This document shows, piece after piece, positions 27,562 through 47,346 of a DNA stretch of 64,000 bases. Every line of letters begins with the position of its first letter. The first letter of the stretch is position 1. The translations under genes were made by a program, and so were the position numbers. The DNA is taken from positions 62,001 to 126,000 of IMG/VR virus record IMGVR_UViG_3300028393_000019; one strand, 5' to 3'. A model generated the notes under the pieces. That model was given only the letters and a program-made list of their open reading frames with translations, had not been told where the DNA came from and ran no database searches.

Positions 27562-30500
27562 ATGGCAAAAGCACAACTGAGACAGTACGTTTTTAACGCT
27601 AGCACAGGCGCAATTGAGGTACCTGGCAAGATAGATTTACAGCAGTTATTAGTAATTACAGACACTACTAAAAACGTAATTCTGTACAATTTCGCAGATA
27701 CCACATTCACTGGTACTACTGTATCATTTCCTAGAGTTAACAACACTAATTTTGTTACTTCTTTGGATAATAGCGATACTTCCACTATCATACAGCTGAA
27801 TAGTGCCGCACTGTCTCTGATCACGGCCAACAGTATTTCTAGTGGTGATGTATTACAAATTTTATATGAACAGCCATACCAAAATATCCGTATGCCAGAA
27901 ATTGGTACAGACGCATTCGAGCGTACACGTACTAGTAACCCACAAAGCATGTTGGACGCTGACTTTGAGTACGGACTACAGCCAACCAAGTGGTTGACTT
28001 ATGACCTAATGCGCGGTTATCCCAGCGTGTACGAAGTTCCAGGCACTGATCAATCAGTAACCAGTGTTACTACAGATGCATCAGCTGGTACAGGAGGTGT
28101 AGGTGAAAGTTTGATCACAGTGACCAACTCAGTTACTTTTCCAGCCAGTTGGGCAGTAGGCACTCCGATCACTATCAAAGGCTATTTGAACACAGTGCAA
28201 GGATTTGCCCGTGCTGAAGGTAGTTTTTTAATCAACACAGTCAATAATAATGTGTTAACGTACTATGCCAAGGCCAAAGTTGGTACAACCAACGGTGATG
28301 TACTAAGCTCAACTTATACCCAACTGCGTCAAGGTGCATTTTACACCGGATCAAGTGTGGGAACATCAACATTTACAGCCAGTGCAGTCAGTGCAGTTGG
28401 CACAACCAGTTCAGGCAGTATTACCACAGCTGCCACAACAGTAACCGGATCGATCTCCGGAACATTACTAACCACAAGCGGTGGTAGCCCGGCAATCGGA
28501 CAAGTGTTAACAGGTGGCGGCATATTACCATCCACTTACATTGTAAGTGGTAGTGGAAGCAGTTGGACTATTAGCTCAAGTCAAACGATTGCAAGCACTA
28601 CATTTACAGCAACAACCAACACCTTTACTGCCGCCGGCACTTCGAGCGGATTTGCAGTAGGGCAAGTATTGAGTGGCACCGGTGTTGCAACAGGTACAGC
28701 TATCATTGTTAGCGGTTCAAGCGTGGCTCCAGGTGCATTTAGTGGCACCGGCGGCAACGGAACTTATGCTGTTTTACTATACAGCAATGTGACCGGTATT
28801 ACAATCAACGGCACTACGGGATTAAGTACAATCACTGTGACTTTTGCAACCAACCATGGATTTGTTCCAGGATGTACAATTATCAGTCAGATTGCTTCAG
28901 ACTCAGGAACAAATAATCACAGTTTGGCTCAAGGTCCATTCTTTGTAGAATCAACACCAAGTTTGACTACACTAACATTTACAGCCCGCGCCAGCGGACA
29001 GATTACTGGAACACCGACTGGTGTAATTTATTCACGCCCAGATGCATTCTACCAACACAGACCGTTCGACGGCGGTGTTATGTTAGGAACTGGCGGTCCA
29101 GCTCATGGATCAATGGCAGTGCGTATGAGCAAAAAATATATCCGTTATCAATCTGGTAAGAGTATCAATTACAATACCGGTGCGCTGATGGCACCAAACT
29201 ATGACATACGCTCTATTACTGCAACCAACACAGCAATAACAACATTTACAACAACCACAACAGGCACTATCGCAAGTGGAACGTTGGCTATCACTGTGAC
29301 CAGCGCCGCAAGTGCTATAGTTGGTCAGTTGATCAGTGGTACAGGTATTGCAGTAGGCAGTTATATTGTTGCAATTAACAGCAATACATTGACAATCAAT
29401 ATTGCCACACTGGCAACTATCAATGCAGGTACTACAGTTACATTTACTCCTGGTATACAAATTATAACAGATGATACAGATCATGGCCTCCAACCAGGTG
29501 CAACTATCAACGTGCTTGGCGTAACAACCACGGGTTACAGCGGAACTTATACAGTTGGTGCTATCGTTGATGAACGTAGCTTGATTGTAGCAGTAACCAA
29601 TGTGTTGGGAAATACAACTGGTTCTATCAATTCACCATGTACTATGCAGATTACAGGACACTGGGGTGCTACAGTACGATTGGGAACATTTGACGAACAA
29701 AACGGACAGTTTTGGCAGTGGGATGGTCAACAGCTGGCAATTGGACGTCGTAGTTCGACATTCCAAATTGCAGGTACAGTAACTGCCACTGTTGATTCCA
29801 ACAGCGTGGTGGGTGCCAACTCACGTTTTACCAGCCAATTGATAGCAGGCGACCGTGTGGTAATCAAAGGTATGACTCACGTGGTCACTCAAGTGGTAAG
29901 TGATACACAAATCTTTGTAACTCCAGATTATAGAGGAGCAGTCTCTGCTTCCGGTATCAAAATGGTCAAAACTATCGATAGATTGATACCGCAGAGTCAA
30001 TGGAATCAAGATCGTTGTGATGGTTCTGGTAACGGATTCAATGCCAGCGGATACAATATCATTGTCAACAAGATGCAGATGGTTGGACTACAATGGACAT
30101 GGTACGGTGCTGGATTTATTGACTGGATGTTGCGTGGACCAGATGGCAAGTACATCACTGTACACCGTTTGCGCGGCAACAATTTAAATACTGAAGCTTA
30201 CATGCGTTCAGGTAACCAACCAGTTCGCTACGAAGTGGTCAACGAAGCCGCTCGTACCAGTTTGAGTGCATCAGCCGGATCAGGTGACAATACACTAAGT
30301 GTAACAGATGTAACATATTTTCCAAGTGCAAGTGCAACATATCCAGCCTACTGCTATGTGGACAACGAACTTATCAGCTATACTGGACGTACACTAGGAG
30401 CAACAACTCAAACAGTGGTAAATCAGCAATTGACTGCTGGTACACTGACTGGTGTAAGCCGAGCTGTAGCAATGCCAACATATGTAGCTGGCACTACTCG

Positions 30501-31881
30501 TTTGTTTACAGCAGGCTCAGCCAGCACTCACGCTGCCGGCGCAGGTATTATACTAGTGGGACAAACAGCAACACCTAGTATCAGTCACTGGGGTAGTGCG
30601 TTCTTGCAAGACGGTGGTTTTGATACTGATCGTGGATACATTTTCAATTATCAAAGTATCAACACAACTATCAGTACACGTAAGACCACATCGTTTGCTA
30701 TCAGATTAGCACCTAGCGTGTCAAACGCTATAGTAGGCGACCTAGGCACACGTGACTTGATCAATCGTGCGCAGTTGTTGTTACAGGCGATTGAAATTAC
30801 TGTTGGTGGTTCAACCAACAGCAACTCAGCTGTGGTTATTGAAGGTATTTTAAACCCAAGTAACTATCCACTTAACCCAGCTACTGGTATTACTTGGAAC
30901 AGTTTGAACTCAACAGCTCTGCAAACTGGTCAGCCAAGTTTTAGTCAAATTGCCACTGGTACCAGTGTAACATTTGCCAACAGCAACACAGCATCTCCAA
31001 CAGCCAACATTGCTATATCAACAAGCGCAACAACATTACCAGTCAGTTCAATAGCCGGCATACTAGCAGGCGATGACGTATCAAGTGCAACCAGCACAGG
31101 TTTCTTGGGATTGACCAAAGTAACCGCTACTGGCACCAGCACTATAACATTTACTGGTACAACCGTAACTTCTAGTGCATTGGCCACAACCACTGGTGCT
31201 TACATCAGTGGTACTGTACTTTATGTGTTTGGTACTCCAACAGGTGGTACTTTTGCTGTAGGTAGTGTTCTAGGCGGCAACGGTGTGTTACCAGGCACAT
31301 TTATCACTGCGGTATTAACTGGTAGTGTTTCAACAGGTAACTCAACATTCAGTATCAGCCAAAGTCAGTCAGTTGGTAGTCAACAGAGTATAACCACAAT
31401 CACTGCACAGTTGTTTACCTTTGCACCTACAGCACCTACAGCGGCTATTCAAGTAGGTATGCAGTTAACAGGTGGTAGTGTAACTGCTGGCACATATGTA
31501 ACTCTACAGCTAACAGGTAGCGCAGGCGCCGCAGGTACTTACGCTGTTAATCAAACATTCAGCGGTACTCCAACTGGCGCTACAGCTAGCTTTATACAGA
31601 TTAATCAAGCATTGACCAGTACTGTCAACGCAGGTAGTGCAATAACAGTAAGTCGTAATACATATGCACAACCAGGTGAAACTGTATTCTCGTTCATTAG
31701 CTCACCAGCAAACAAAGACTCGCTAGATTTGACACCATTCAAGGAATTGACCAATACGCCAATCGGTGGCCGTGGTACATTCCCCAACGGTCCAGACGTG
31801 CTGTTCATCAATGTGTTCTTGACACAGGGTGCACCAGTGTTGGCCAACTTGGTTCTACGTTGGGGTGAAGCTCAAGCGTAA
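27562..31881 (+). CDS. Large virion structural/fibre protein (1439 aa), paralogue of 19638..26555
   Basis: Shared DADFEYGLQPTKW, YIRYQSGK, WYGAGFID, HWGSAF and RWGEAQA blocks. Confidence 0.85.
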   Translation: MAKAQLRQYVFNASTGAIEVPGKIDLQQLLVITDTTKNVILYNFADTTFTGTTVSFPRVNNTNFVTSLDNSDTSTIIQLNSAALSLITANSISSGDVLQILYEQPYQNIRMPEIGTDAFERTRTSNPQSMLDADFEYGLQPTKWLTYDLMRGYPSVYEVPGTDQSVTSVTTDASAGTGGVGESLITVTNSVTFPASWAVGTPITIKGYLNTVQGFARAEGSFLINTVNNNVLTYYAKAKVGTTNGDVLSSTYTQLRQGAFYTGSSVGTSTFTASAVSAVGTTSSGSITTAATTVTGSISGTLLTTSGGSPAIGQVLTGGGILPSTYIVSGSGSSWTISSSQTIASTTFTATTNTFTAAGTSSGFAVGQVLSGTGVATGTAIIVSGSSVAPGAFSGTGGNGTYAVLLYSNVTGITINGTTGLSTITVTFATNHGFVPGCTIISQIASDSGTNNHSLAQGPFFVESTPSLTTLTFTARASGQITGTPTGVIYSRPDAFYQHRPFDGGVMLGTGGPAHGSMAVRMSKKYIRYQSGKSINYNTGALMAPNYDIRSITATNTAITTFTTTTTGTIASGTLAITVTSAASAIVGQLISGTGIAVGSYIVAINSNTLTINIATLATINAGTTVTFTPGIQIITDDTDHGLQPGATINVLGVTTTGYSGTYTVGAIVDERSLIVAVTNVLGNTTGSINSPCTMQITGHWGATVRLGTFDEQNGQFWQWDGQQLAIGRRSSTFQIAGTVTATVDSNSVVGANSRFTSQLIAGDRVVIKGMTHVVTQVVSDTQIFVTPDYRGAVSASGIKMVKTIDRLIPQSQWNQDRCDGSGNGFNASGYNIIVNKMQMVGLQWTWYGAGFIDWMLRGPDGKYITVHRLRGNNLNTEAYMRSGNQPVRYEVVNEAARTSLSASAGSGDNTLSVTDVTYFPSASATYPAYCYVDNELISYTGRTLGATTQTVVNQQLTAGTLTGVSRAVAMPTYVAGTTRLFTAGSASTHAAGAGIILVGQTATPSISHWGSAFLQDGGFDTDRGYIFNYQSINTTISTRKTTSFAIRLAPSVSNAIVGDLGTRDLINRAQLLLQAIEITVGGSTNSNSAVVIEGILNPSNYPLNPATGITWNSLNSTALQTGQPSFSQIATGTSVTFANSNTASPTANIAISTSATTLPVSSIAGILAGDDVSSATSTGFLGLTKVTATGTSTITFTGTTVTSSALATTTGAYISGTVLYVFGTPTGGTFAVGSVLGGNGVLPGTFITAVLTGSVSTGNSTFSISQSQSVGSQQSITTITAQLFTFAPTAPTAAIQVGMQLTGGSVTAGTYVTLQLTGSAGAAGTYAVNQTFSGTPTGATASFIQINQALTSTVNAGSAITVSRNTYAQPGETVFSFISSPANKDSLDLTPFKELTNTPIGGRGTFPNGPDVLFINVFLTQGAPVLANLVLRWGEAQA

Positions 31882-38136: not shown

Positions 38137-38343
38137 CTAGTGTTTCCTTAGATTAGCGCATATACCCGCGATAAGCGCATTGGGATTTGCACTATTGGCA
38201 TTGATACGCTCAATATCTTCTACAGCTACAGTATATAGCTCATGACGCTGAGCCAGTAGATAAAAACGATCTCTAAGCGTGGTAGCTTGAAATACACTGA
38301 CAACAGCGCCTATAATGCGAGCTAGAATGCGGGAATAGTCCAT
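38137..38343 (-). CDS. Small hypothetical protein
   Basis: 68-aa ORF; CTATATAC just upstream. Confidence 0.6.
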   Translation of the reverse strand: MDYSRILARIIGAVVSVFQATTLRDRFYLLAQRHELYTVAVEDIERINANSANPNALIAGICANLRKH

Positions 38344-38543
38344 ACAGTATATAGCACCCGAATGGGTCCTGTGGGTCTATTTCAGATTCGCGTAAAAAAT
38401 TATAAAGAAGTACTTACAGTTTTATGGTGGTGAAAATACTTCGGTACCCATGCGCTACTAGCTATGTTAGTGTGTACTTACATGTATAGCCCCTCACCCC
38501 TCTGTGTCGAGATGAATGCCATTCGGTCGCCGGTCGAGAGAAG

Positions 38544-38586
38544 AAAAAAAATCCCCACCACCGGGAGCGAATCGGATAGTGAGGAT
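38544..38586 (-). terminator. Intrinsic terminator whose loop is AUUCGCUCC
   Basis: 13-bp stem with 2 G.U pairs and one bulge, followed by a U-tract. Confidence 0.8.
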
Positions 38587-38695
38587 CAAAACGAGGATAT
38601 GCCTCGTTTTAGGTGGGCTAGACCTAGCGGGAGCGAATCGCGTTGATTGGTCTAGCCCTACTGCTAAGGGCGCTCTTATGTGTGTTGTTGTATAC
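38544..38695 (-). ncRNA. Candidate anti-RBS small RNA / structured 3' UTR with two AUUCGCUCC loops
   Basis: Three hairpins (38615-38658, 38588-38610, 38551-38586); G.U pairs and U-tract fix the minus strand; loops complementary to GGAGCGAA early RBSs. Confidence 0.65.
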
Positions 38696-39597
38696 TAGCG
38701 TGAGCCCCTCATGCATGTTACTTCTGCTACAGCTTGCCACTTGTCCGGGAAGCTGGCTGCCAAGTCTGCTACCTTGAGCACTGTGCGCAGGCTCAGCTCA
38801 CGCATGCGATGCTTGTTGGAATCCACGAATGCAACCACTTCCAGCTTCTTCTCGTCAGTGAGCTCGTATGAATCCAGCATGCCATGCTCGGTAACTACCT
38901 GCTTGATGCGTAACACCTTCTCGCGTTCAGTGTCGATGGTAAGGTCCAAATAGTGGCAACGGCTCTCTAGTGCTTCCAAGTGATCCTGTAGCTTCTTGCT
39001 TTTCACGTGATCGAACTTGATGTTGGTAATGAAGATCGCACCGCCCTTGAACTCGAATGTGTTGGGCACACCTTCACTACGTAGCAAGCGACTGTCTGTG
39101 TTCCACGAGATCGTACGCTTCTTTGACGTATCTAACGCGGCCTTCAAGATGTTTAGACTGAGATCATCCAACAGGATCGAATCACAGTCGTCGAACACTA
39201 GGATGCTCTTCTTGTCTGAGAACTCGTACAGCTTGCTATACAAGCCAATGGCACTCATAGCGCCTTTGACGATCTCGTACTTCTTCAGCTTCTGATCCTG
39301 TGCGATATCAGCCAGCACATCATGCTTTGACAGAACCTTCTCTACACCGTAGCTCTTGCCCACGCCTGGGGGGCCTGTCACGATCATAGCTCGCACATCG
39401 CCCTTCTTTACAGCACGAGTCATGTCATCCAAGATCTCAAAGCGATCACGTAGACGATTCAGGATCTGTTCATCTGACTCGTGTGCGATGTTCTTCTTTA
39501 CGGGTTCTTGCTCTAGGCTCGCTGTGGTGCCTTTGCTGGTTTTTGGCTGTTTCTGAAGTGCCATTAGCATCTTACTGGTAACTACCTTTGTTGTCAT
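38695..39597 (-). CDS. AAA+-type P-loop ATPase
   Basis: Walker A GPPGVGKS, Walker B LVFDDCD, IFITN, ALESR. Confidence 0.85.
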   Translation of the reverse strand: MTTKVVTSKMLMALQKQPKTSKGTTASLEQEPVKKNIAHESDEQILNRLRDRFEILDDMTRAVKKGDVRAMIVTGPPGVGKSYGVEKVLSKHDVLADIAQDQKLKKYEIVKGAMSAIGLYSKLYEFSDKKSILVFDDCDSILLDDLSLNILKAALDTSKKRTISWNTDSRLLRSEGVPNTFEFKGGAIFITNIKFDHVKSKKLQDHLEALESRCHYLDLTIDTEREKVLRIKQVVTEHGMLDSYELTDEKKLEVVAFVDSNKHRMRELSLRTVLKVADLAASFPDKWQAVAEVTCMRGSR

Positions 39598-39626
39598 ACA
39601 CGCTCCTGTGTTAAATTAATAATAGT

Positions 39627-39655
39627 ATTGTACAGTCTCGTTGAGTCTGTGTCAA
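39627..39655 (-). promoter_or_regulatory. sigma70 promoter TTGACA-17-TACAAT
   Basis: Read directly. Confidence 0.8.
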
Positions 39656-39975
39656 TCCAATCGGCTGCCTGCGTAGGCTGTCAAGCCCAAAGCCTTCAGA
39701 TAGTTGGCCAGGGCATAGGCGCCTGCTTCTTTGATGTCCACGTTTTGCACGGGCAGATCTCCCGGATTCCACATGCTCAAACACTTGGGTTTGTAGTCCT
39801 TCTTGAACCCCGCGGCAATCAATTCCTTAGCCTGCTTTGAGTTGGTACGGTCCACGTAGACATCAACCCAAGCAAAGCCGCAAGCGCCGCGATCTCCGCC
39901 CCACTTTTGATATTCGGCCATGCTGGCTTGTTTGGCCAATGGAATGCCTGCTTGGATCTGTTCTGCTGTAATCAT
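39652..39975 (-). CDS. Hypothetical early protein
   Basis: AGGAGCGAC RBS; GACGFAWV motif. Confidence 0.85.
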   Translation of the reverse strand: MITAEQIQAGIPLAKQASMAEYQKWGGDRGACGFAWVDVYVDRTNSKQAKELIAAGFKKDYKPKCLSMWNPGDLPVQNVDIKEAGAYALANYLKALGLTAYAGSRLD

Positions 39976-40009
39976 AAGTCGCTCCTATAATTGCGTTGTT
40001 GAAGTGTAT

Positions 40010-40038
40010 ATTATACTACCAAAGCGTGGGGTTGTCAA
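40010..40038 (-). promoter_or_regulatory. sigma70 promoter TTGACA-17-TATAAT
   Basis: Perfect consensus. Confidence 0.85.
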
Positions 40039-40204
40039 CCGGACGCTCAGTGCGTTTCAGCATGAGAACGCCACAGCCCATGGTTGCTAATCCCAGGATC
40101 GCTACAAGGACACAGTCCAGGACGGGACCACCGGTTTCGATCCCACCCACCGCAGCCATGGTTAGCAGTAGGCCTGTAAAGATTAAGAATGTGCTTGATT
40201 TCAT
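40016..40204 (-). CDS. Small two-helix membrane protein
   Basis: Two hydrophobic segments; AAGGAG RBS. Confidence 0.75.
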   Translation of the reverse strand: MKSSTFLIFTGLLLTMAAVGGIETGGPVLDCVLVAILGLATMGCGVLMLKRTERPVDNPTLW

Positions 40205-40533
40205 GCTAGCTCCTTGTGCAGATCGCAGTAGTCAACTTCAGGTTCTTTGTAGGTAATAGAACCTTCGTACTCCAGCTGGCTCCGCTCGAAGTCGCTAAGG
40301 TAGCCTTCTGCTTCCACGCGGAATCCCACGATGTACTCTCTGCAGTAGTCATTTGATCGCTCGATGGAGCCACGTGCCATCTCAACGATCTCTGCAGGAT
40401 CGATGTTGCGAGGTGTGTTGAGGATCTTGTAGCTGGAACCGCCCTTGAACTTCCAATACTGTGGGCAAGCACCTTCGCCGTCCCAATCATGGGCACCGTA
40501 GTTCTCCATGTACTGTGTGTCAATTACTAGCAT
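40201..40533 (-). CDS. Hypothetical early protein
   Basis: Start moved to 40533 (MLVIDTQYMENYGAHDW...YWKFKGG); AGGAGCGAA RBS. Confidence 0.85.
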   Translation of the reverse strand: MLVIDTQYMENYGAHDWDGEGACPQYWKFKGGSSYKILNTPRNIDPAEIVEMARGSIERSNDYCREYIVGFRVEAEGYLSDFERSQLEYEGSITYKEPEVDYCDLHKELA

Positions 40534-40564
40534 AGTTTCGCTCCTAGTTAGTGTGTAAAGTATT

Positions 40565-40593
40565 ATTATACTGCCGTTTGGCCCGTTTGTCAA
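40565..40593 (-). promoter_or_regulatory. sigma70 promoter TTGACA-17-TATAAT
   Basis: Perfect consensus. Confidence 0.85.
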
Positions 40594-40838
40594 CAGACTG
40601 TGTAGGTTTGTCCCAGGCTGTCCAGTGCTTCTTGTTGTATTTTAGCCACATACTTGTTCACAGTCTTCAGCGCCTTGCGCTCCTTCTCGTCCACGTCAGG
40701 ACAGCCGTAGTTGGCACGGAAGTTGACCCACGCACTGAGTGTGCCCGCTCGATCTACACCAGTCACAGATCCTTTAAAGGATTCCATGTAATTCAACCGA
40801 TCACCGTTCAACAGTTCTATTGCTTTGGATAGTTTCAT
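40590..40838 (-). CDS. Hypothetical early protein
   Basis: AGGAGCGAAC RBS. Confidence 0.8.
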   Translation of the reverse strand: MKLSKAIELLNGDRLNYMESFKGSVTGVDRAGTLSAWVNFRANYGCPDVDEKERKALKTVNKYVAKIQQEALDSLGQTYTVC

Positions 40839-40862
40839 AGTTCGCTCCTTCTTTGTTAATGT

Positions 40863-41114
40863 TCAGCAGTCTGGGTCAAAGCTCATCCACTCGTCGTACT
40901 CAGAGGGCTGACCGTCGTCCTCGTAGTCCATAGCACGTGGAAACTGATCCTCGGGCTCAGGGGCTTCGCAGATCACCACTTCACCATCGGAATCAAGCTC
41001 AACCCGAGGATGGCTGTAGCCATCGTAGGTCTCGTAACTGCCACGCAAGATCACGTGGGCATCCTGTGGCATTTGCTCCAATGCCTTGATCAAGTCTCTT
41101 ACTGTAGTTGTCAT
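40863..41114 (-). CDS. Hypothetical early protein
   Basis: AGGAGCGAG RBS; EYDEWMSFDPDC C-terminus. Confidence 0.8.
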   Translation of the reverse strand: MTTTVRDLIKALEQMPQDAHVILRGSYETYDGYSHPRVELDSDGEVVICEAPEPEDQFPRAMDYEDDGQPSEYDEWMSFDPDC

Positions 41115-41250
41115 ATCTCGCTCCTTCTCTTGTTCAGCTTAGGCCGAGTCTCCAAACTCGCTTCGTATCCCTTGGCTACGACCCTTTTTGCATTTCTGCG
41201 TGGGTCCTTGCATTTGAGGATCGCCTTGCTTTCTAACTGTTCATGTGCTT

Positions 41251-41279
41251 ATTATAGCTTCAAAAAATAACCCGCGCAA
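41251..41279 (-). promoter_or_regulatory. sigma70-like promoter TTGCGC-17-TATAAT overlapping terminator
   Basis: Read directly. Confidence 0.6.
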
Positions 41280-41292
41280 CCGGCGGGTTATT
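41262..41292 (-). terminator. Intrinsic terminator after tRNA
   Basis: AATAACCCGC/GCGGGTTATT stem plus T-run. Confidence 0.8.
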
Positions 41293-41293
41293 C

Positions 41294-41370
41294 TGGTGGG
41301 CCCACCTGGACTCGAACCAGGGACCAAAGGATTATGAGTCCTCTGCTCTAACCAACTGAGCTATAGGCCC
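41294..41370 (-). tRNA. tRNA with CAU anticodon, probably tRNA-Ile2 (lysidine type)
   Basis: GGGCCTATAGCTCAGTTGGTTAGAGCAGAGGACTCATAATCCTTTGGTCCCTGGTTCGAGTCCAGGTGGGCCCACCA; encoded CCA; C4-G69 and C5-G68 pairs as in Ile2 rather than Met. Confidence 0.92.
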
Positions 41371-41546
41371 GTAAATCGGTTGACTTCTACTGGATCTTGC
41401 CCGTCTTCATCTTTGAGGATGTAGACTTCTTCGCATTCCCACATGTGATCTTCAGCTATCAGCTCGGCTTCTTTGAGGGTAGCAACACAATCGATCAGCT
41501 CATCTCGCCCATCGATTGTGCCCCAAACTTCATACTGAACGAACAT
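41361..41546 (-). CDS. Small acidic hypothetical protein
   Basis: 61-aa ORF; 3' end overlaps tRNA 5' end by 10 nt. Confidence 0.65.
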   Translation of the reverse strand: MFVQYEVWGTIDGRDELIDCVATLKEAELIAEDHMWECEEVYILKDEDGQDPVEVNRFTGL

Positions 41547-41548
41547 GT

Positions 41549-41911
41549 TTAGGCTGTGAACGGAGTGTTCTCGTCTTCGGTCACTGCAGGTGCAGCCTTG
41601 ACTGCCTTGGTGGTCTTAGCTGTAGCGGTCTTGGCCACTGCTTTGACAACTGCTGTTGCCTTGGGAGCCTTCTCATCCAAGTACTCCGTGATAGCTGCCT
41701 GAGCATGTGCTCCTGAGAAATCATCCATGCCTTTGATGGCTTGAATACCTGCATACTTGGTGTATGGCTTCTCGAGATCTACCAAGGTGATATCCTCGTG
41801 ACCATGTTTAGCTAGCACCTTGATGCGCATCACATCATTTGCGAAACGTACCTTGTACTCACCGTTGAGCTTTGATACACCAAAAACGTTATACTGTTTA
41901 TCTGTTGCCAT
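41549..41911 (-). CDS. Hypothetical protein with Ala/Lys-rich tail
   Basis: GAGG RBS; KVRFAND motif. Confidence 0.85.
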   Translation of the reverse strand: MATDKQYNVFGVSKLNGEYKVRFANDVMRIKVLAKHGHEDITLVDLEKPYTKYAGIQAIKGMDDFSGAHAQAAITEYLDEKAPKATAVVKAVAKTATAKTTKAVKAAPAVTEDENTPFTA

Positions 41912-41969
41912 GTTGTTACCTCTATGTGTGTGGTTTAAGTTGTTATGCCAGTTTCCTTAGCATGTGTTA

Positions 41970-41998
41970 ATTGTACTATCTTTTGGTCTGCTTGTCAA
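41970..41998 (-). promoter_or_regulatory. sigma70 promoter TTGACA-17-TACAAT
   Basis: Read directly. Confidence 0.8.
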
Positions 41999-42260
41999 CC
42001 AATTTCTTCATCTTTTGGACATCTTTTCGGCTAGTTGCCACGGGTAGCGGCTTGCCAAACTCTCTGTCCAAATAGTGTGCCAGCATCTTGCCCTTGATGT
42101 TGGTAACCAGATCAAACTGGTCCTGATCAGGGCAGATGAACCGATACGGGCTGTGTCCCCAGCTCATCGTCTTGAGAAACTGATTGAACAGTCTGCGATG
42201 CTCTTTGATGTCCACGTCGAACTCAACCAGCGGTCGCAGATGGAAATCAAGTAGGCTCAC
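41976..42260 (-). CDS. Hypothetical protein
   Basis: GTG start; SWGHSPYRF motif. Confidence 0.7.
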   Translation of the reverse strand: MSLLDFHLRPLVEFDVDIKEHRRLFNQFLKTMSWGHSPYRFICPDQDQFDLVTNIKGKMLAHYLDREFGKPLPVATSRKDVQKMKKLVDKQTKR

Positions 42261-42387
42261 AGGGCCTCTCTTTCCACTGCTTGATCACTTGAGCTAGCGG
42301 TTCGAAGTTCCACTCTCGGATCTTGGGGCGAATGCGATCGGTCTGCTTCTGATCGTGCTCTTTATTCTTCTGCTGGTTGGTCTTCAT
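42247..42387 (-). CDS. Small hypothetical protein (46 aa, not in the ORF track)
   Basis: GAGG RBS; fills the gap between neighbours. Confidence 0.5.
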   Translation of the reverse strand: MKTNQQKNKEHDQKQTDRIRPKIREWNFEPLAQVIKQWKERPCEPT

Positions 42388-42961
42388 TGGTTTCCTCTTC
42401 ATATTCTGCTACTGTTTCTGAAATGCCCATACAGTCATCTAACGCTGTAGGGATCGATTCTCTGATCTGCTCAGAGGTCATTGCTGTGATATCGTAGTAG
42501 TCATCACCGTTCTCGTCGTAGATCCCGCAGAATCCCATGCCCGACTCATAGTAGTAGGCCCGAACTGTGTAGCCCTGCTCCATCAATGCTTCATAGACTC
42601 CACAGGGTGGGGCCCACGCACTGTCGAAGCCGAATGTGACGCCAGTCTTGCCATCATGTGCATCGTCGTATTCCACTGCTTCGTAGGGTTCTACATCCCA
42701 CTTGGTGCCCCACTCGTTCACGCAGTAGTCATACCAAGTGCTGTAGCCATACTTCTCAAGGTTGGACTTCTCTGCTGCCTCAAGAGCGATCTGCTCGGGA
42801 TTGTCAGCGGAACCAACTCGACCCGCTACAATGTGCAGTTCTTTGGGCACAGGCTTGGCAAAGTCGCAGAACTTGCCTTCGTTGATCGCACCTACCAACT
42901 CATACATCTTCGCAGGGTCAGTGTGGTTAATCTCTACTGTGTTGTTGCACCAATTAGGCAT
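42362..42961 (-). CDS. DUF1281/YubB ferredoxin-like family protein
   Basis: MPNWCNN, WYDYCVNEWGTKWD, FDSAWAPP and YYESGMGFCG. Confidence 0.75.
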   Translation of the reverse strand: MPNWCNNTVEINHTDPAKMYELVGAINEGKFCDFAKPVPKELHIVAGRVGSADNPEQIALEAAEKSNLEKYGYSTWYDYCVNEWGTKWDVEPYEAVEYDDAHDGKTGVTFGFDSAWAPPCGVYEALMEQGYTVRAYYYESGMGFCGIYDENGDDYYDITAMTSEQIRESIPTALDDCMGISETVAEYEEETNEDQPAEE

Positions 42962-42987
42962 ACGCTGTTCTCCTAAGTTAAAACACT

Positions 42988-43016
42988 ATTATACAACCAA
43001 AAGGCCTAGAAGTCAA
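42988..43016 (-). promoter_or_regulatory. sigma70 promoter TTGACT-17-TATAAT
   Basis: Read directly. Confidence 0.8.
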
Positions 43017-43029
43017 CCGTTGTTTCTAC

Positions 43030-43174
43030 GCCACAGAATAAGTTCCGGGAGGGTTTTGGGAAGTCTCACCCGGGTCGACTAGCAGGTTTTGTAGGGTCTC
43101 TTATGAATCGCTAACCTATGGCTAGCCCTACAGGAACGCACTTGTCCCTCAGCGATGTCTAGGAGCGAACTAGC
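43030..43174 (-). ncRNA. Second candidate anti-RBS element
   Basis: Non-coding; CUAG-UUCGCUC-CUAG hairpin; shares short motifs with the 38544 element. Confidence 0.4.
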
Positions 43175-43343
43175 TGTTTACCGTAGCATTAGGGCTGAAT
43201 TCTTCATCCTGGATACCATTCAAGGTCAACCAATCGTAGACCATCTCTACGGGTATGTCCAAGGTCTTGGCTATGTTCTTCTCGGTCAAGCCCTCGATGT
43301 AGAGTTGCTCGATGTCATATGCGATTTCTGATAGTTTACTCAT
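43170..43343 (-). CDS. Small HTH-like protein (57 aa, not in the ORF track)
   Basis: MSKLSEIAYDIEQLYIEGLTEKNIAKTLDIPVEMVYDWL. Confidence 0.7.
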   Translation of the reverse strand: MSKLSEIAYDIEQLYIEGLTEKNIAKTLDIPVEMVYDWLTLNGIQDEEFSPNATVNS

Positions 43344-43512
43344 CATTCATTTCCTCTGGTAGATATGCAATTAAGTTGCTTCTGGGAACACTCTTTAACA
43401 GCTCTTCAACAGCAGTTAGATCCCCACCCTCGAGATCTACAGCGATCTGATCTAGAACCCGGTCGATCAAGTCCGATAGGGCTACAGCTCGTTTAGTTTC
43501 AAATCCAGTCAT
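43336..43512 (-). CDS. Small hypothetical protein (58 aa, not in the ORF track)
   Basis: AAGGAG RBS; coupled to the downstream ORF. Confidence 0.7.
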   Translation of the reverse strand: MTGFETKRAVALSDLIDRVLDQIAVDLEGGDLTAVEELLKSVPRSNLIAYLPEEMNDE

Positions 43513-43524
43513 TCTATCTCCTTG

Positions 43525-44013
43525 CTAAACAGCGGGGCCGGTCTTGGCCTTTTGCTTGAGGGCTGTGAGCACACGCTTCCAGCGACCACTTTCACGAGTA
43601 CGGTAGAACCACTTGCCCGACTCTAGGCTGTCATCGTAGCGATACAGGTAGAAGTATTCGCACCATGAACCCTGGTAGTGATCTACAGCAGTTGCGGCGG
43701 ATTCAAAGCTCTTGTAGGGAGCATCTTCGCCGCGATCACGTGAGTAGAAGGTGGTCATATCGCCGTAGAGCTTCTCGTACTCATCTTCGGGTAACTCGCT
43801 GTCCAGCCTTGAGAACTCGTGCTTGATGCCGATCTCGGCTCGCAGTGAGCTGATGTCGCCCAGGGCGATCAAGTTGTTGACCTTAGGGCTAGCACCGTAG
43901 TTGTTCTCTAAGATCTCGCCGTTGTGTTCAAGGTAGCCATCCCAGTGGCAGTAGACGGCCTTGACACGACCACTACTAGGGTTCTCAATACCAATCATTG
44001 ATCTAGTACCCAT
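43525..44013 (-). CDS. Phage hypothetical protein (MGTRS...YCHWDGY type)
   Basis: Start moved to 44013; GGAGG RBS. Confidence 0.85.
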   Translation of the reverse strand: MGTRSMIGIENPSSGRVKAVYCHWDGYLEHNGEILENNYGASPKVNNLIALGDISSLRAEIGIKHEFSRLDSELPEDEYEKLYGDMTTFYSRDRGEDAPYKSFESAATAVDHYQGSWCEYFYLYRYDDSLESGKWFYRTRESGRWKRVLTALKQKAKTGPAV

Positions 44014-44014
44014 A

Positions 44015-44221
44015 TCAGCCTCCGAACACTTCTTTGTTAAGGATCTCGTTCTCAACCAAGTCGTAGCAAGCATTCATCGCTTGAGTCACGAAGGTGTAGA
44101 CCAGGGCCTTTTCTTTGGCCGGCAGTTGCTCAATGCGCTCCTGCAGTTCGGGCAAAGTGGGGGTGTAGAAGAACCCATTGCGTGGAATTGGGTTTTGCAC
44201 TTGATCGTAAATACCTGACAT
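44015..44221 (-). CDS. Hypothetical early protein
   Basis: AGGAGCGAA RBS. Confidence 0.8.
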   Translation of the reverse strand: MSGIYDQVQNPIPRNGFFYTPTLPELQERIEQLPAKEKALVYTFVTQAMNACYDLVENEILNKEVFGG

Positions 44222-44253
44222 AAGTTTCGCTCCTTCTGTGTGTGTAAGTGTAT

Positions 44254-44282
44254 ATTATAACACGGGCCAGGGCCCGTGTCAA
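44254..44282 (-). promoter_or_regulatory. sigma70 promoter TTGACA-17-TATAAT with palindromic spacer
   Basis: ACACGGGCC-AG-GGCCCGTGT at 44260-44279. Confidence 0.85.
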
Positions 44283-44289
44283 TCTATAG

Positions 44290-44643
44290 TTAAATACCCT
44301 GGAACGCAGTAAGGGCTTCTTGTGCGCCCGCATCCAAATACACCGCATCCATAGCCTTTTGCTTCTCACGTGCTACAGTTGCACGATACACTTCCAGCTC
44401 TGCGCTCTTAGCTTCCATAGCAGGCCACACAACATCAGAGGGGTTAAGGTAAGGACCCGTGTAGTCTACCTTGTCTGCCTTCAGCGTAATGTCGCCGCTC
44501 TTAATGCCTTCAAACACCATGCCCCACGTGGGCTGTTGCGGACGACCGCTGGCACCAAACAGTTCTACTGCCTTAGCCTGCACCTTAGCCTGTGCTACTT
44601 CGTTAAGACGACGAACAAAATACTCTCGAGATTGTGCTTCCAT
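44290..44643 (-). CDS. Hypothetical early protein
   Basis: Start moved to 44643; AGGAGCGAA RBS. Confidence 0.8.
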   Translation of the reverse strand: MEAQSREYFVRRLNEVAQAKVQAKAVELFGASGRPQQPTWGMVFEGIKSGDITLKADKVDYTGPYLNPSDVVWPAMEAKSAELEVYRATVAREKQKAMDAVYLDAGAQEALTAFQGI

Positions 44644-44653
44644 TTTTCGCTCC

Positions 44654-44776
44654 TTAGTTTGCTGTGTTGTAAACTCTGTACTTGCCTTCTGCATCGTAAT
44701 ACCAAACGCCGCCTATGTTGTGGTATCCTTTTTTGCGGAATAGTGTTGCATAATATTTCGCGTAATTAAATGCCAT
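44654..44776 (-). CDS. Small protein (40 aa, MAFNYAKYYATLFRKKG..., not in the ORF track)
   Basis: AAGGAAG RBS directly after a promoter; stop abuts the next RBS. Confidence 0.65.
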   Translation of the reverse strand: MAFNYAKYYATLFRKKGYHNIGGVWYYDAEGKYRVYNTAN

Positions 44777-44802
44777 CTTACTTCCTTTGTTGCTAAGTGT
44801 AT

Positions 44803-44831
44803 ATTATAGCACCAAACTAAAGCCCTGTCAA
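44803..44831 (-). promoter_or_regulatory. sigma70 promoter TTGACA-17-TATAAT
   Basis: Perfect consensus. Confidence 0.85.
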
Positions 44832-44842
44832 CCCCAGGGTCT

Positions 44843-45106
44843 TTACATACTCCAGTAGCTCTCACTGGCGGGCGAGCAATAGTAGGGCGTGTCGTAACGC
44901 TCTGTGAACCGGCCCCCACCCATCATGTTGGTCTTCTCGACCATAGTCACGTGGATCTCACAACGATAGCCCTCACTGGCCGGGTACTTGCGAGCATAGA
45001 CCTCTTGGATAGCACCACGATCAGCAGTGCTATGGTCTACCTTGCGATCCAGTCGCTCCCCGGACTTTCGACGGGCATCACGTTTATAAACTTCTACTGT
45101 GTACAT
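44843..45106 (-). CDS. Hypothetical early protein
   Basis: AGGAGCGAAC RBS; TPYYCSPASESYWSM C-terminus. Confidence 0.85.
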   Translation of the reverse strand: MYTVEVYKRDARRKSGERLDRKVDHSTADRGAIQEVYARKYPASEGYRCEIHVTMVEKTNMMGGGRFTERYDTPYYCSPASESYWSM

Positions 45107-45139
45107 AAGTTCGCTCCTTATCTAACTGTCTAAGCATTA

Positions 45140-45168
45140 ATTATAGTGCCAAATCAGTTGTGTGTCAA
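45140..45168 (-). promoter_or_regulatory. sigma70 promoter TTGACA-17-TATAAT
   Basis: Perfect consensus. Confidence 0.85.
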
Positions 45169-45386
45169 CCCCAGGCCTTGAATAACCCGAATAGGCATAT
45201 GGTTAATGCTACTACGTTGGTAACCAATTGTGGCTTATTTGCCACACGTATGCTCCAGATCAAGTAGCAGATCCCGCCCATGAATCCAGCCACGATGTTC
45301 CATGGATAGATGTCAAAGCTCATGAGCGTATACATGGCCAGGAAGCATCCAGTGCCGATCCACTGGATGATGTCGTTGAACTTCAA
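45165..45386 (-). CDS. Small three-helix membrane protein
   Basis: Hydrophobic pattern. Confidence 0.75.
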   Translation of the reverse strand: MKFNDIIQWIGTGCFLAMYTLMSFDIYPWNIVAGFMGGICYLIWSIRVANKPQLVTNVVALTICLFGLFKAWG

Positions 45387-46087
45387 GCCGCTTCCTTCAA
45401 ATGGATCACGAACCCACTGTAGTCCTTCTTGGCACGACCCTTGGCTTTCAACCCAATGATGCCTACCCGGGGGTCTAAGAAGCGCAGATCATCTTCATCC
45501 GCACTGTACACACCTTCGGGGATCCGGTCGTAGACCACGGCAACATTCATGCCCTGAGCCACTGCCTTGGGAATGTCTGCGGCATTGGATTCAGCACGGC
45601 TGAACGTGAGGTGATAGTTGGGGATATGTGCGGTCTTGCGTCCTAGGATCTTGGTATAGTCATAGAACTGTACTGTAGGGAACATTTGGAAGATGTTCAA
45701 GCCAGTGTCGCCGATCGTGTACTTTTCCCACGCTAGATCACTAGTACCGTTCAAGCGGAACACGGGCTTTAGGCCCTGCTTACGGGCATAATTAATAGCC
45801 TTGTCGATGTCATTGGTTAGATCCTTCATGAAAGCATCACGATCGAAGAAGAATGCAACCGTCTTGCGTATACGTGCTCGCTGTATAACGTTGGTGTTCT
45901 CACCCCGCTTGAACATGCCCCCACGTCCAGCAGTGTTGAGACAGCTAGCAATGCATCCAGGGGTAGCCTTGGGACAGGTGTTGTGACCGCTCAGGGTGCT
46001 GGGCGCGAGATGCAGGATGAAGCTTAGATAGCCCCGAGCCGTGCCCTTTTGGATCTTGGGGTTAGCTGTACTCAGTAGTTTAAACAT
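45383..46087 (-). CDS. GP88/DUF7227-like phage protein
   Basis: CP.A..GC...CL, RLNGTSD, FYDYTK and YHLTFS motifs; AGGAGCGAAC RBS. Confidence 0.65.
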   Translation of the reverse strand: MFKLLSTANPKIQKGTARGYLSFILHLAPSTLSGHNTCPKATPGCIASCLNTAGRGGMFKRGENTNVIQRARIRKTVAFFFDRDAFMKDLTNDIDKAINYARKQGLKPVFRLNGTSDLAWEKYTIGDTGLNIFQMFPTVQFYDYTKILGRKTAHIPNYHLTFSRAESNAADIPKAVAQGMNVAVVYDRIPEGVYSADEDDLRFLDPRVGIIGLKAKGRAKKDYSGFVIHLKEAA

Positions 46088-46119
46088 GGTTCGCTCCTTG
46101 TTTTGCAGTGTAAGTGTAT

Positions 46120-46148
46120 ATTATACTGTCAATCGATCTGTATGTCAA
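46120..46148 (-). promoter_or_regulatory. sigma70 promoter TTGACA-17-TATAAT
   Basis: Perfect consensus. Confidence 0.85.
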
Positions 46149-46326
46149 CCACTTGACCCTTTGAAAAGATCCAGTATTCGTTGATAGGGCACGAGCTGGA
46201 TCCAGATGATACCCAAACACACGCATTGCCTGGTTGCACTACCGCATGCTCGGTTCCCCGTTCTAGTAGCCGAGCCAGCACTACCAGTAGCTCAAACTCG
46301 TTGACTCCGGGCCTTACTTCAACCAT
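46129..46326 (-). CDS. Small hypothetical protein
   Basis: Start moved to 46326 (MVEVRPGVNEFELL). Confidence 0.65.
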   Translation of the reverse strand: MVEVRPGVNEFELLVVLARLLERGTEHAVVQPGNACVWVSSGSSSCPINEYWIFSKGQVVDIQID

Positions 46327-46327
46327 A

Positions 46328-46531
46328 TCAACCCCAATCTTTGAAGTCACCGTTGCGCTCGTTGTCCATGTAGCCCTGCCAATAGGCTGCCACTTCTGCC
46401 TCTGTGAGCTCTGTGACGGGTTCACCATTGTAAGTGCCCTGGGGATATTTGTGTGGACGAGCTGGACGACGGTAGTAGCTGTCTGCACTACCTCTATCAT
46501 AGCATCCGCCATGTACTCGATCTATAACCAT
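46328..46531 (-). CDS. Small hypothetical protein
   Basis: GAGGAG RBS; HGGCYDRGSADSYY motif. Confidence 0.8.
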   Translation of the reverse strand: MVIDRVHGGCYDRGSADSYYRRPARPHKYPQGTYNGEPVTELTEAEVAAYWQGYMDNERNGDFKDWG

Positions 46532-46557
46532 TTTTCTGCTCCTCTAACTAAAACACT

Positions 46558-46586
46558 ATTATAACGCCAAAAGGCACTGCTGTCAA
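46558..46586 (-). promoter_or_regulatory. sigma70 promoter TTGACA-17-TATAAT
   Basis: Perfect consensus. Confidence 0.85.
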
Positions 46587-46613
46587 GCAATGCCCTTAGA
46601 CTCTACAGGGTTA

Positions 46614-46994
46614 TTACAGTTCCATACTAGCGTAGCCGTCGTCTTGCATGCCCTGCTCTGTAAAGCTAACACTAGTCCCTAGCAAGTCGCTTACAGCCGC
46701 CTCAAAGCCCGTGTCTGTGTACATTCGCCAGCTTCCCTCTACATCAGCGCCGTCTACGCCGTCTACGTCATAGCAGACTGCAATGTGTGTGCTAATGTCG
46801 CCATCGCCGTCGTAGTCTGTCTCTGCAATGTGTATGCTTGTAATTGTAACTTCCTCAATGTCGCAGTCCCACATACTGTCGCCTGCAAGTTGTACTTTTA
46901 CTCGGCACTTGTACTCCGTGTTAACAGTGTCGTCTTCTTGTTTAACTTCTACTCTTTTTAGTTTTTTACTAACTTTAAACTGTGTTGCTTGCAT
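46614..46994 (-). CDS. Acidic hypothetical early protein
   Basis: AGGAGCGAA RBS; YTDTGFE...FTEQGMQ motif. Confidence 0.85.
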   Translation of the reverse strand: MQATQFKVSKKLKRVEVKQEDDTVNTEYKCRVKVQLAGDSMWDCDIEEVTITSIHIAETDYDGDGDISTHIAVCYDVDGVDGADVEGSWRMYTDTGFEAAVSDLLGTSVSFTEQGMQDDGYASMEL

Positions 46995-47016
46995 AAGTTT
47001 CGCTCCTTAAAAAACA

Positions 47017-47045
47017 ATTATACTACACTTTGTCCAAAATGTCAA
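47017..47045 (-). promoter_or_regulatory. sigma70 promoter TTGACA-17-TATAAT
   Basis: Perfect consensus. Confidence 0.85.
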
Positions 47046-47077
47046 TGCACTGTAATAAGCCCTTACGGGCTGTAGGG

Positions 47078-47320
47078 TTATGCTGTTTGCTTTGCTTGCA
47101 AACGTGCAATCTCTAGTTGCATTTGCACAATTTTTTCTTTTTCTAGTTTAGCAATAAACTTTACTTTTTTTGCTTCGATATCTCTGCGGAACTTTGCTGT
47201 GCTTACATTTAGCATATAAGACGTTTGTCCGTAGCTTTGCATTGTGTTTTGCATACAGTAAACTTTAGCACGAGCGGCAGACATTGCGAATGCATTAACT
47301 GTGTTTGCGTATTGACCCAT
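47078..47320 (-). CDS. Hypothetical early protein
   Basis: AGGAGTCGAA RBS. Confidence 0.8.
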   Translation of the reverse strand: MGQYANTVNAFAMSAARAKVYCMQNTMQSYGQTSYMLNVSTAKFRRDIEAKKVKFIAKLEKEKIVQMQLEIARLQAKQTA

Positions 47321-47346
47321 TTCGACTCCTTTGTTGCTAAGTTGTT

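Follow-up and report, generated by a model that had tools for sequence, protein, structure and literature searches.

In Staphylococcus aureus, the 3'UTR of the icaR mRNA carries a pyrimidine-rich motif, UCCCCUG, that pairs with the Shine-Dalgarno (SD, ribosome-binding) sequence of the same mRNA and blocks formation of the initiation complex (Ruiz de los Mozos et al. 2013, PMC3868564), a pairing for which action within one molecule or between molecules has not been resolved. Together with hbs, icaR is one of the few single-gene cases on which 3'UTR-to-SD pairing has so far rested. Trans-acting small RNAs such as S. aureus RNAIII (hairpins 7, 13 and 14) and RsaE/RoxS present the same pyrimidine-rich sequence in several hairpin loops of one RNA, including the terminator hairpin, and thereby pair with the SDs of several mRNAs and block their translation, while 3'UTR-derived small RNAs such as CpxQ, SroC and those of DicF-type processing share the terminator of the parental mRNA. 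Anti-SD-like 8-mers placed hundreds of nucleotides downstream on the same RNA pair with the ribosome-binding site in vivo and repress it, at the level of translation or stability (Gill et al. 2025 preprint, PMC12697547). The SD is also sequestered in cis in early read-through transcripts of T4 e, soc and 49. How large lytic phages end early gene expression after transcription has been described in detail only for T4, where proteins such as RegB and RegA do so. Here, we describe RNA hairpins at the end of an early gene of an uncultured giant phage, whose loops are the exact complement of the unusual ribosome-binding site used by many early genes, and a partial complement of that gene's own. The two motifs change together across about 190 related phage contigs, which points to a possible built-in RNA brake on early protein synthesis.

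We analysed a 64,000-nucleotide stretch of the IMG/VR record IMGVR_UViG_3300028393_000019 (positions 62,001 to 126,000; hereafter the window, to which all coordinates refer), a 265-kb contig from a lake sample. A preliminary description, made from the sequence alone, had noted three minus-strand hairpins after the stop codon of an ATPase gene, two of them with identical loops complementary to the extended SD of seven early genes at 40.5-47 kb. This observation proved correct. The gene (38695..39597, minus strand) encodes a 300-aa AAA+/P-loop ATPase, for which our searches returned only phrog_1250, a family of unknown function. Its stop codon is followed by an A/U-rich, mostly single-stranded spacer (38659..38694, minus strand) without promoter-like sequence, which could be a processing site, although this is an inference; in relatives the spacer is 25-90 nt long and poorly conserved. 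Hairpin 1 (38615..38658, minus strand) consists of a 10-bp basal stem GGGCUAGACC/GGUCUAGCCC, an internal loop and a 3-bp GCG/CGC cap displaying the loop AUUCGCUCC at 38630-38638. Hairpin 2 (38588..38610, minus strand), AAAACGAGG/CCUCGUUUU, has a 5-nt loop without the motif and in our reading acts as a spacer or stabilising hairpin; relatives have variable extra hairpins at this position. Hairpin 3 (38551-38586, minus strand) is an intrinsic terminator with a 13-bp stem containing one bulge and two G.U pairs, the same loop AUUCGCUCC at 38564-38572, and an 8-U tract at 38544-38551, an arrangement that recurs in relatives. The 166-nt region folds at -53.4 kcal/mol (z = -4.45), and 0 of 200 shuffles fold as well, while the plus strand folds less exceptionally (z = -3.1).

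Within the window, ATTCGCTCC occurs only twice, both times in these loops (0.25 expected; 1 of 100 shuffles reaches 2), whereas GGAGCGAA, the exact complement of the loop, occurs 11 times against 1.03 expected, a count reached by 0 of 100 shuffles. Seven of these are genuine SDs of the form (A/T)AGGAGCGAA-N2-4-ATG on the minus strand. They precede a 110-aa early gene (SD 40537..40544, start 40533) that lies in the same transcription unit array as the ATPase, an 82-aa gene (SD 40841..40848, start 40838), a 68-aa gene (SD 44226..44233, start 44221), a 117-aa gene (SD 44646..44653, start 44643), an 87-aa gene (SD 45110..45117, start 45106), a 234-aa gene assigned to phrog_1617 (SD 46090..46097, start 46087) and a 126-aa gene (SD 46999..47006, start 46994). 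The 68-, 87-, 234- and 126-aa genes lie behind perfect sigma-70 promoters. The ATPase's own SD, GGAGCGUG (39599..39606, minus strand), is complementary to the loops at 6 of 8 positions, pairing CGCUCC with GGAGCG, and two further near-matching SDs were found, GGAGCGAG at 41117-41124 and GGAGCGAC at 39978-39985, giving seven perfect and three partial targets. A possible third anti-SD copy, CUAG-UUCGCUCC-UAG, lies at 43162..43169 (minus strand) directly after the stop codon of ORF 43170..43346. Its sequence is conserved in three relatives' loci (L001, L005 and L054), but support is weak because the local structure is not significant (z = -0.32). Taken within the window alone, the coincidence of loops and SDs is suggestive; the evidence from relatives makes it far more than chance.

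The SD-bearing genes are early genes behind consensus sigma-70 promoters. Of 223 GGAG-type SDs behind consensus sigma-70 promoters, 129 are GGAGCGAA. The window contains 13 such promoters on the minus strand at 39.6-47.4 kb, and the ATPase transcription unit has a sigma-70-type promoter (39627..39655, minus strand, TTGACA-17-TACAAT). No promoter lies between the ATPase stop codon and hairpin 1, and a minus-strand transcript across the element is inferred from the promoters and the terminator only. Not all early promoters lead to the anti-SD terminator, since a good terminator follows a tRNA-Met gene at about 41267, and five of the seven perfect targets lie in the transcription unit that ends there.

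Conservation of the loops in relatives had been named beforehand as a point on which the idea could fail, and the loops are conserved. ATTCGCTCC occurs after the ATPase stop codon, mostly twice, in 58 distinct IMG/VR loci whose ATPase identity falls to about 57%, while distances and stems differ. In an alignment of hairpin 1 from 23 sequences, 98.6% of cells are paired (25-38% in slid controls), all 7 basal pairs show changes on both sides, 53 cells show double changes, and no shuffle in 500 matches this, while the apical 20 nt are invariant. These compensatory changes, like the G.U pairs and the U-tract, are on the ATPase-sense strand. The terminator hairpin is conserved as (R)UAARYCCG-AUUCGCUCC-CGGY on variable stems in 46 distinct relatives. 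In minimum-energy folds, motif bases are unpaired in 87% of cases in the clade with this loop (clade A) and in 75% in its sister clade (clade B), against 38-41% for other UTR bases.

Loop and SD also change together. The 58 distinct loci with UUCGCUCC in the 3'UTR have 187 GGAGCGAA SDs and 6 GAGGGC SDs, whereas the 33 loci of clade B, with GCCCUC in the 3'UTR, have 1 GGAGCGAA SD and 210 of the GAGGGC type (GAGGGCA), and 28 loci with neither motif have 7 and 3, respectively. On the ATPase tree the GCCCUC group is one clade with 100/100 support, and a subclade nested inside it that lost the spacer and the element also lacks any extended SD. The large switch from A to B is, however, a single evolutionary event, so these counts are not independent observations, and independent events come mainly from a deeper outgroup clade. 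There, a single loop YUAGCUCCU faces the ATPase's own upstream SD AGGAGCUAR and follows it base for base. The pairs are A/U in 13, G/C in 7, G.U in 4 and A/C in 2 loci, so that 2 of 26 matched loci show A/C mismatches; the base-level covariation in the outgroup has Fisher p = 0.0135, not corrected for phylogeny. A further matched pair is UGGCUCC with GGAGCCA, and longer or different matched pairs of 9-11 nt occur in loci L290, L309, L355, L347/349/353, L346/350 and L348. In L068 the UTR repeats UAGUGUG against a CACACUA leader. The ATPase's own SD is GGAGCG.. in 52 of 57 loci, with the perfect 8-mer in 19, and GAGGGCA in 17 of 26, and outgroup loops match the gene's own ribosome-binding region over 7-11 nt. 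On the other hand, L076 keeps the loops but has no perfect GGAGCGAA SD in 12.9 kb, and an unbiased search of L073, L074 and L077 found no convincing anti-SD copies.

Co-folding gave a mean ddG of -10.5 kcal/mol for the seven targets against -5.3 for 86 other start sites; this agrees with the hypothesis, but the ranking is noisy, with one spurious ORF scoring better than all real targets, and we do not lean on it. A nucleotide search of a phage collection matched only the tRNA-Met, implying no close cultured relative, and the homologous ATPase genes of T4 and PA5oct are not followed by an anti-SD hairpin, so that no cultured system is at hand. The nearest known phages are PA5oct and Sinorhizobium phage Phosso, at about 50% identity in the large terminase (TerL). 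An Rfam 15 search at gathering thresholds found only the tRNA, and a permissive search of 38300-38800 gave only chance-level hits with E > 1. In an exact 14-mer scan of viral contigs most single hits are chance or coding, although the scan revealed a second context (clade D) and unrelated phages with the same SD 8-mer. Read on the plus strand, the loops spell GGAGCGAA, sometimes followed by TTG, but the ORFs there often have no start codon, span 2-123 codons and encode unrelated peptides, which does not support a conserved small ORF on that strand. Literature searches found no description of this element.

Together, these data suggest that the 3'UTR of the early ATPase mRNA carries an anti-SD element, in which two hairpins, the second being the transcription terminator, hold (A)UUCGCUCC unpaired at their tips for pairing with the phage's private, extended ribosome-binding site GGAGCG(AA). 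One partner would be the ATPase's own mRNA, the most widely conserved and, in this view, ancestral one, and in this phage's clade the same site heads many other sigma-70-driven early genes. Pairing would cover the GGAG core with 6-8 bp, more than the 4 bp these SDs can offer to 16S rRNA, and should therefore keep 30S subunits off and perhaps speed mRNA decay, although a 9-nt loop, or the 6-nt loop of clade B, cannot form 8 bp without opening the short apical stem. As early transcripts accumulate, early translation would be turned down, amounting to negative feedback or an early shut-off. The element may act as part of the mRNA, within one molecule or between molecules, or as a stable 3' fragment protected by its hairpins. 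We hold this explanation with fair confidence. The motifs, their display in hairpins, and the covariation of stems and of loop with SD are established by the analysis, whereas repression, action in cis or in trans, processing, the existence of a separate small RNA and timing are inferred.

The preliminary description had proposed a phage-encoded RNA, possibly derived from the ATPase 3'UTR, that shuts off a regulon of early genes, and this interpretation is only partly supported. The link between loops and extended SD by base pairing is supported, but a separate trans-acting RNA, repression and shut-off are not demonstrated by these data. The emphasis also shifts, because the ATPase's own ribosome-binding site, treated there as a side remark, is the partner conserved most widely. 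An icaR-like pairing between the two ends of one mRNA, giving self-regulation, is therefore the likely ancestral core, and control of a set of early genes looks like an extension in this phage's clade and its sister clade. Since regulating the five targets in the unit ending near 41267 would need action in trans, that part of the proposal remains plausible.

Among alternatives, the one that survives best, though we consider it unlikely, is that the element is strictly self-regulatory and pairs only with the SD of the ATPase mRNA that carries it, the many other GGAGCGAA sites having arisen because early promoter-leader-SD cassettes were copied around the genome. Consistent with this, the ATPase's own SD is the partner in every clade, including the outgroup where no other gene shares it, leaders behind the promoters resemble each other, and ectopic icaR 3'UTR did not act in trans (PMC3868564). 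However, GGAGCGAA stays invariant at 187 sites in 58 diverged genomes while adjacent leaders vary, about 210 SDs of many genes switched when the loop switched to GCCCUC, anti-SD copy number rises from 1 in the outgroup to 2-4 in clades A and B, and the perfect matches in the window are the other genes, not the ATPase. This is a sub-case of our explanation rather than a contradiction of it.

It is very unlikely that the loops are binding sites for an RNA-binding protein or a processing or termination factor, with an incidental resemblance to an anti-SD. An invariant 9-nt loop with invariant closing and internal-loop bases (CCAACG...CGGYAA; UAAAUCCG...CGGU) is typical of protein-recognised hairpins, but a protein site would not need to be the complement of the SD, to switch to the complement of a new SD in clade B, or to follow single-base SD differences in the outgroup. 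A helper protein acting together with the pairing is not excluded. Slightly less likely still, GGAGCGAA/TTCGCTCC could be a double-stranded DNA site for a phage protein, for example a repressor just downstream of early promoters, read in either orientation, with the RNA complementarity as a by-product. An asymmetric duplex site would read as the motif on one strand and its complement on the other, the SD sites lie about +15 to +25 from consensus promoters, and a co-evolving protein would also produce clade-wide switches. This does not explain why every antisense copy sits in the unpaired tip of a hairpin whose stem is kept by compensatory changes and G.U pairs on the sense strand, why the copies lie only in 3'UTRs or terminators, why outgroup loops follow the individual SD of one gene up to 11 nt, including flanking bases outside any common motif, or why G(SD).U(loop) combinations are tolerated. 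Finally, that these are ordinary tandem terminator or stabiliser hairpins, with loops duplicated locally and matching the SD by chance, fits the modest surprise of two 9-mer copies in the window and the normal terminator of hairpin 3, but is contradicted by loop conservation on covarying stems in 58 loci and by motif pairs matched in at least four sequence versions.

A bolder possibility, which we regard as tentative and somewhat less likely than not, is that these giant phages run a private SD/anti-SD code, in which early genes are tagged with a lineage-specific extension of the ribosome-binding site and a phage RNA displayed on terminator hairpins reads that tag to shut early translation off in trans. 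The code would have been swapped wholesale at least once, from GGAGCGAA/UUCGCUCC to GAGGGCA/UGCCCUC, giving natural, mutually orthogonal RNA switches for a temporal gene class. An RNA solution to ending early expression, conserved in about 150 of the 190 or so uncultured aquatic giant-phage contigs examined, would be a new regulatory layer. Natural covariation here gives the kind of evidence for pairing usually obtained with compensatory mutants, and would show the self-regulation of one gene widening into control of a set of genes. The A-type and B-type pairs look mutually orthogonal, sharing at most 3 bp by inspection of the motifs, which would make them ready-made parts for synthetic translational control. 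The extended SD and its mirror image also mark early genes and operon ends in metagenomic phage contigs.

Compared with described systems, the closest case remains icaR, with which this locus shares a 3'UTR motif complementary to the SD of the same mRNA. In icaR, however, a complementary region of about 40 nt in a single bacterial gene becomes an RNase III substrate, whereas here the match is 6-11 nt, too short for a classical RNase III substrate, is displayed in hairpin loops including that of the terminator, is repeated 2-4 times in clades A and B, belongs to a phage, and matches an extended SD shared by many early genes, the motif pair having been exchanged as a whole between clades. RNAIII and RsaE/RoxS resemble it in exposing, in hairpin loops, a seed complementary to the SDs of several mRNAs, but those are separately transcribed bacterial RNAs with UCCC/CCCC seeds against ordinary G-rich SDs, whereas this element has no Rfam homology and its seed reads a lineage-specific SD extension. 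Like 3'UTR-derived small RNAs, it lies between a stop codon and the mRNA's own intrinsic terminator, without a promoter of its own and with stable hairpins that could protect a processed fragment, although known examples use Hfq and a single-stranded 5' seed rather than seeds in loops. Long-range anti-SD-like sequences within bacterial mRNAs are depleted as harmful accidents, while here they are positively conserved, structured and repeated. The proposed logic is that of T4 RegB and RegA, in which early messages are marked by their ribosome-binding site (GGAG for RegB) and switched off after the transcript is made; RegB and RegA are proteins, whereas here the recognising partner appears to be RNA.

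Our analysis confirms the preliminary description of this region, which had placed three consecutive hairpins on the minus strand just after the ATPase stop codon. Directly after the stop codon (38695) of a 300-aa AAA+ ATPase gene, hairpin 1 (38615-38658) consists of a 10-bp stem, an internal loop and a GCG/CGC cap around AUUCGCUCC, hairpin 2 (38588-38610) carries no motif, and hairpin 3 (38551-38586) has 13 bp, one bulge, two G.U pairs and the loop AUUCGCUCC, followed by eight U. The region folds much better than shuffled versions (z = -4.45, 0 of 200), while the plus strand folds less exceptionally, and within the 64 kb the 9-mer occurs only in these two loops. Its complement, GGAGCGAA, occurs 11 times against about 1 expected, and seven of these copies are true Shine-Dalgarno (SD) sequences of minus-strand genes at 40.5-47 kb, with the form AAGGAGCGAA-N2-4-AUG. 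The SD of the ATPase itself is GGAGCGUG, and two further genes have GGAGCGAG and GGAGCGAC. We also detected a possible third copy of the loop motif, CUAG-UUCGCUCC-UAG at 43162-43169, directly after a stop codon, which is conserved in three relatives but shows no significant local structure.

The window derives from a large phage that encodes the large terminase, a gp32-like single-strand DNA-binding protein, helicases and tail fibre proteins. Two very large ORFs of 2305 and 1439 aa (plus strand, 19638-26555 and 27562-31881) lie next to tail-fibre-like genes, and a Nol-like carbamoyltransferase gene is found at 15149-16621. The ATPase is 100% identical on a 265,680-bp IMG/VR contig, and the nearest cultured phages are PA5oct and Sinorhizobium phage Phosso, at about 50% terminase identity. 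Between 39.6 and 47.4 kb, the minus strand carries 13 consensus or near-consensus sigma-70 promoters, nine of them perfect TTGACA-N17-TATAAT, most of which sit 20-30 nt before a GGAGCGAA SD, showing that these are early genes read by the host polymerase. Counted over 39627-47375 together with 54096 and 57972 on the minus strand, the array comprises 14 such promoters, nine of them perfect (12/12, 17-nt spacer), most lying 20-30 nt upstream of a gene start.

The ATPase has its own promoter at 39655-39627, and hairpin 3 is the terminator of this unit. A tRNA-Met gene (41294-41370, minus strand) sits inside the early region and is followed by its own strong intrinsic terminator, ending near 41267, which splits the early array into two transcription units; this tRNA is the only part of the region with nucleotide matches in cultured phages. 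Five of the seven perfect targets (44.2-47 kb) therefore belong to a unit that ends before the ATPase unit. The ~200 nt after hairpin 3 (38343-38543, minus strand) form a conserved noncoding block that is present at the same position in about 47 loci of the clade to which this phage belongs (clade A). It contains a G-rich box plus TATA(T/C)A (about 38474-38500, unique in the window), a small ACAAC..GUUGU hairpin, GCGCAUGGGUACCGAAGU, UAAGUACUUCUUUAUAAUUUUUUACGCG (duplicated in some relatives), and AGGACCCAUUCGGGC-UAUAUAC just before the next start codon. An Rfam search found nothing in this block, which looks like one or more phage-specific promoters or another noncoding RNA.

To determine whether the element is conserved, we searched viral contigs with the ATPase protein, which returned 80 contigs. 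In 58 distinct loci the sequence UUCGCUCC, almost always as AUUCGCUCC, follows the ATPase stop codon, mostly in two copies, at varying distances and on stems of unrelated sequence. The apical parts, in contrast, are fixed, with CCAACG-loop-CGGYAA in the first hairpin and RUAARYCCG-loop-CGGY in the second. In an alignment of 23 gap-free first hairpins, all seven basal pairs change on both sides, 98.6% of cells are paired against 25-38% when the partners are slid, no shuffle in 500 reaches the observed covariation, and G.U pairs appear on the ATPase-sense strand. In minimum-energy folds, motif bases are unpaired in 87% of cases, against 38% for the rest of the UTR. This is an RNA structure under selection whose job is to display the loop.

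We next asked whether loop and SD change together. In the 58 clade A loci with UUCGCUCC, 187 distinct gene starts carry GGAGCGAA and 6 carry GAGGGC, and among SDs lying behind consensus sigma-70 promoters 129 of 223 are GGAGCGAA. A second search, seeded with one of the related loci (L069), gave a sister clade of 33 distinct loci (clade B), whose ATPase 3'UTR carries 1-4 copies of GCCCUC, typically UGUGCCCUCG in the terminator loop and one copy at the stop codon. The SDs in this clade are GAGGGCA, with 210 of that type against one GGAGCGAA. In clade B loci such as L203, L208 and L214-L216 (0-200 nt after the ATPase stop codon), the first GCCCUC copy overlaps or abuts the stop codon, and in minimum-energy folds of read-through RNA it pairs with the GAGGGCA SD of the next gene about 190 nt downstream, suggesting cis control of the downstream gene in read-through transcripts, with masking by terminating ribosomes. 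On the ATPase tree clade B has 100/100 support, and the UUCGCUCC state is also found in a deep outgroup and so is ancestral. A subclade nested in clade B (clade C) has lost the spacer after the ATPase gene and also has no extended SD at all, with 18 of 20 promoter-proximal starts lacking any. In a further clade (clade D) the GGAGCGA SD is kept, and the anti-SD hairpin sits about 800-850 nt further on, after one more gene. The switch from A to B is one event and must not be counted as many, although it involved several loops and dozens of SDs per genome.

Several smaller, separate changes come from the outgroup clade, in which no SD is shared across genes. Even so, the ATPase's own SD, AGGAGCUAR, is faced by a downstream hairpin loop YUAGCUCCU, the SD base and loop base being A/U in 13 loci, G/C in 7, G.U in 4 and A/C in 2. 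Other loci in this clade carry different matched pairs, namely GGAGCCAAC with GUUGGCUCC, UAGGAGCUAAA with UUUAGCUCCUA (11 nt), AGGAGCUAAC with GUUAGCUCCU, GGAGACAGAC with GUCUGGCUCC (9 of 10) and ACACGGA with UCCGUGU, as well as an 11-nt match just 5' of the SD in one locus (L348). In another relative, L068, five of eight ribosome-binding regions share the leader CACACUA, and the long ATPase 3'UTR (L068:2965-3200) carries three complementary UAGUGUG repeats, with AAUCGCUCC as its terminator loop. Over 194 distinct loci, the longest complement to the own ribosome-binding region within 900 nt downstream averages 7.6 nt, against 6.4 nt in the ATPase coding region and 7.0 nt on the opposite strand as controls. 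None of the statistics in this analysis is corrected for phylogeny. The same SD 8-mer also appears as CCGGGAGCGAAUCG-AUG before a gene start in unrelated AT-rich viral contigs that are not ATPase relatives (L083, L094, L117, L120, L121, L130, L155 and L159), so GGAGCGAA may be used as an SD outside this family.

The only relation that explains a sequence and its complement changing together, with the complement always held in an RNA hairpin tip on the sense strand, is RNA-RNA pairing between the 3'UTR loops and the ribosome-binding region, and this link is strongly supported by natural covariation. The preliminary interpretation, a phage-encoded RNA shutting off a set of early genes, is thus supported in part, namely for the pairing. 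The mechanism, translational repression in cis and probably in trans, is a well-grounded inference drawn from sequence alone in phages of uncultured hosts, and decay, processing at the A/U-rich spacer and any helper protein such as Hfq are likewise inferred rather than shown. These SDs offer only four bases (GGAG or GAGG) to 16S rRNA but six to eight, and up to eleven, to the loop, so that pairing should, by inference, out-compete 30S binding. Since the partner found in all clades is the mRNA's own SD, the core would be a contact between the 5' and 3' ends of one mRNA, giving self-limitation of the ATPase. In clades A, B and D the same extended SD heads a large share of early genes, and the anti-SD copy number rises from one to two to four, which we read as a widening from one gene to a set of early genes. 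In this window the ATPase matches 6 of 8 positions and seven other genes match 8 of 8, five of which sit in another transcription unit. If these are regulated by the element, it must act between molecules, either as the ATPase mRNA or as a hairpin-protected 3' fragment. In some relatives, genes with the motif also lie downstream of the terminator. The net effect would be negative feedback, in which the more early RNA has been made, the less early protein is started.

A purely protein-recognised loop does not explain complementarity that follows the SD, although a helper protein is not excluded, because the apical flanks are invariant. A duplex-DNA operator read in both orientations would also give clade-wide switches, but it does not explain the hairpin display, the sense-strand G.U pairs, the restriction to 3'UTRs, or the gene-specific 9-11-nt matches. 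A plus-strand function is unlikely, as the ORFs behind the plus-strand GGAGCGAA are short and unconserved. Chance, or ordinary terminators, is excluded by the conservation of the structured element and by the joint change of loop and SD.

Our literature searches returned no description of this element, a 3'UTR anti-SD element in a phage with a lineage-specific extended SD, but its principle is already known. The closest case is the S. aureus icaR mRNA, whose 3'UTR motif UCCCCUG pairs with its own SD, blocks initiation and creates an RNase III site, and for which action in cis or in trans was left open (PMC3868564). The present element shares this principle, but its match is short, displayed in loops including the terminator loop, repeated, found in a phage and shared by SDs in many genes, and the long RNase III duplex is not present. 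The loop display on several hairpins, including the terminator, resembles RNAIII and RsaE; however, there is no Rfam homology, and no evidence of a separate transcript. T4 reaches a similar end with the proteins RegB and RegA, and the T4 and PA5oct homologues of the ATPase gene lack the element. A recent preprint shows that anti-SD-like 8-mers hundreds of nt from the ribosome-binding site pair with it in vivo and are normally selected against (PMC12697547), whereas here they are selected for.
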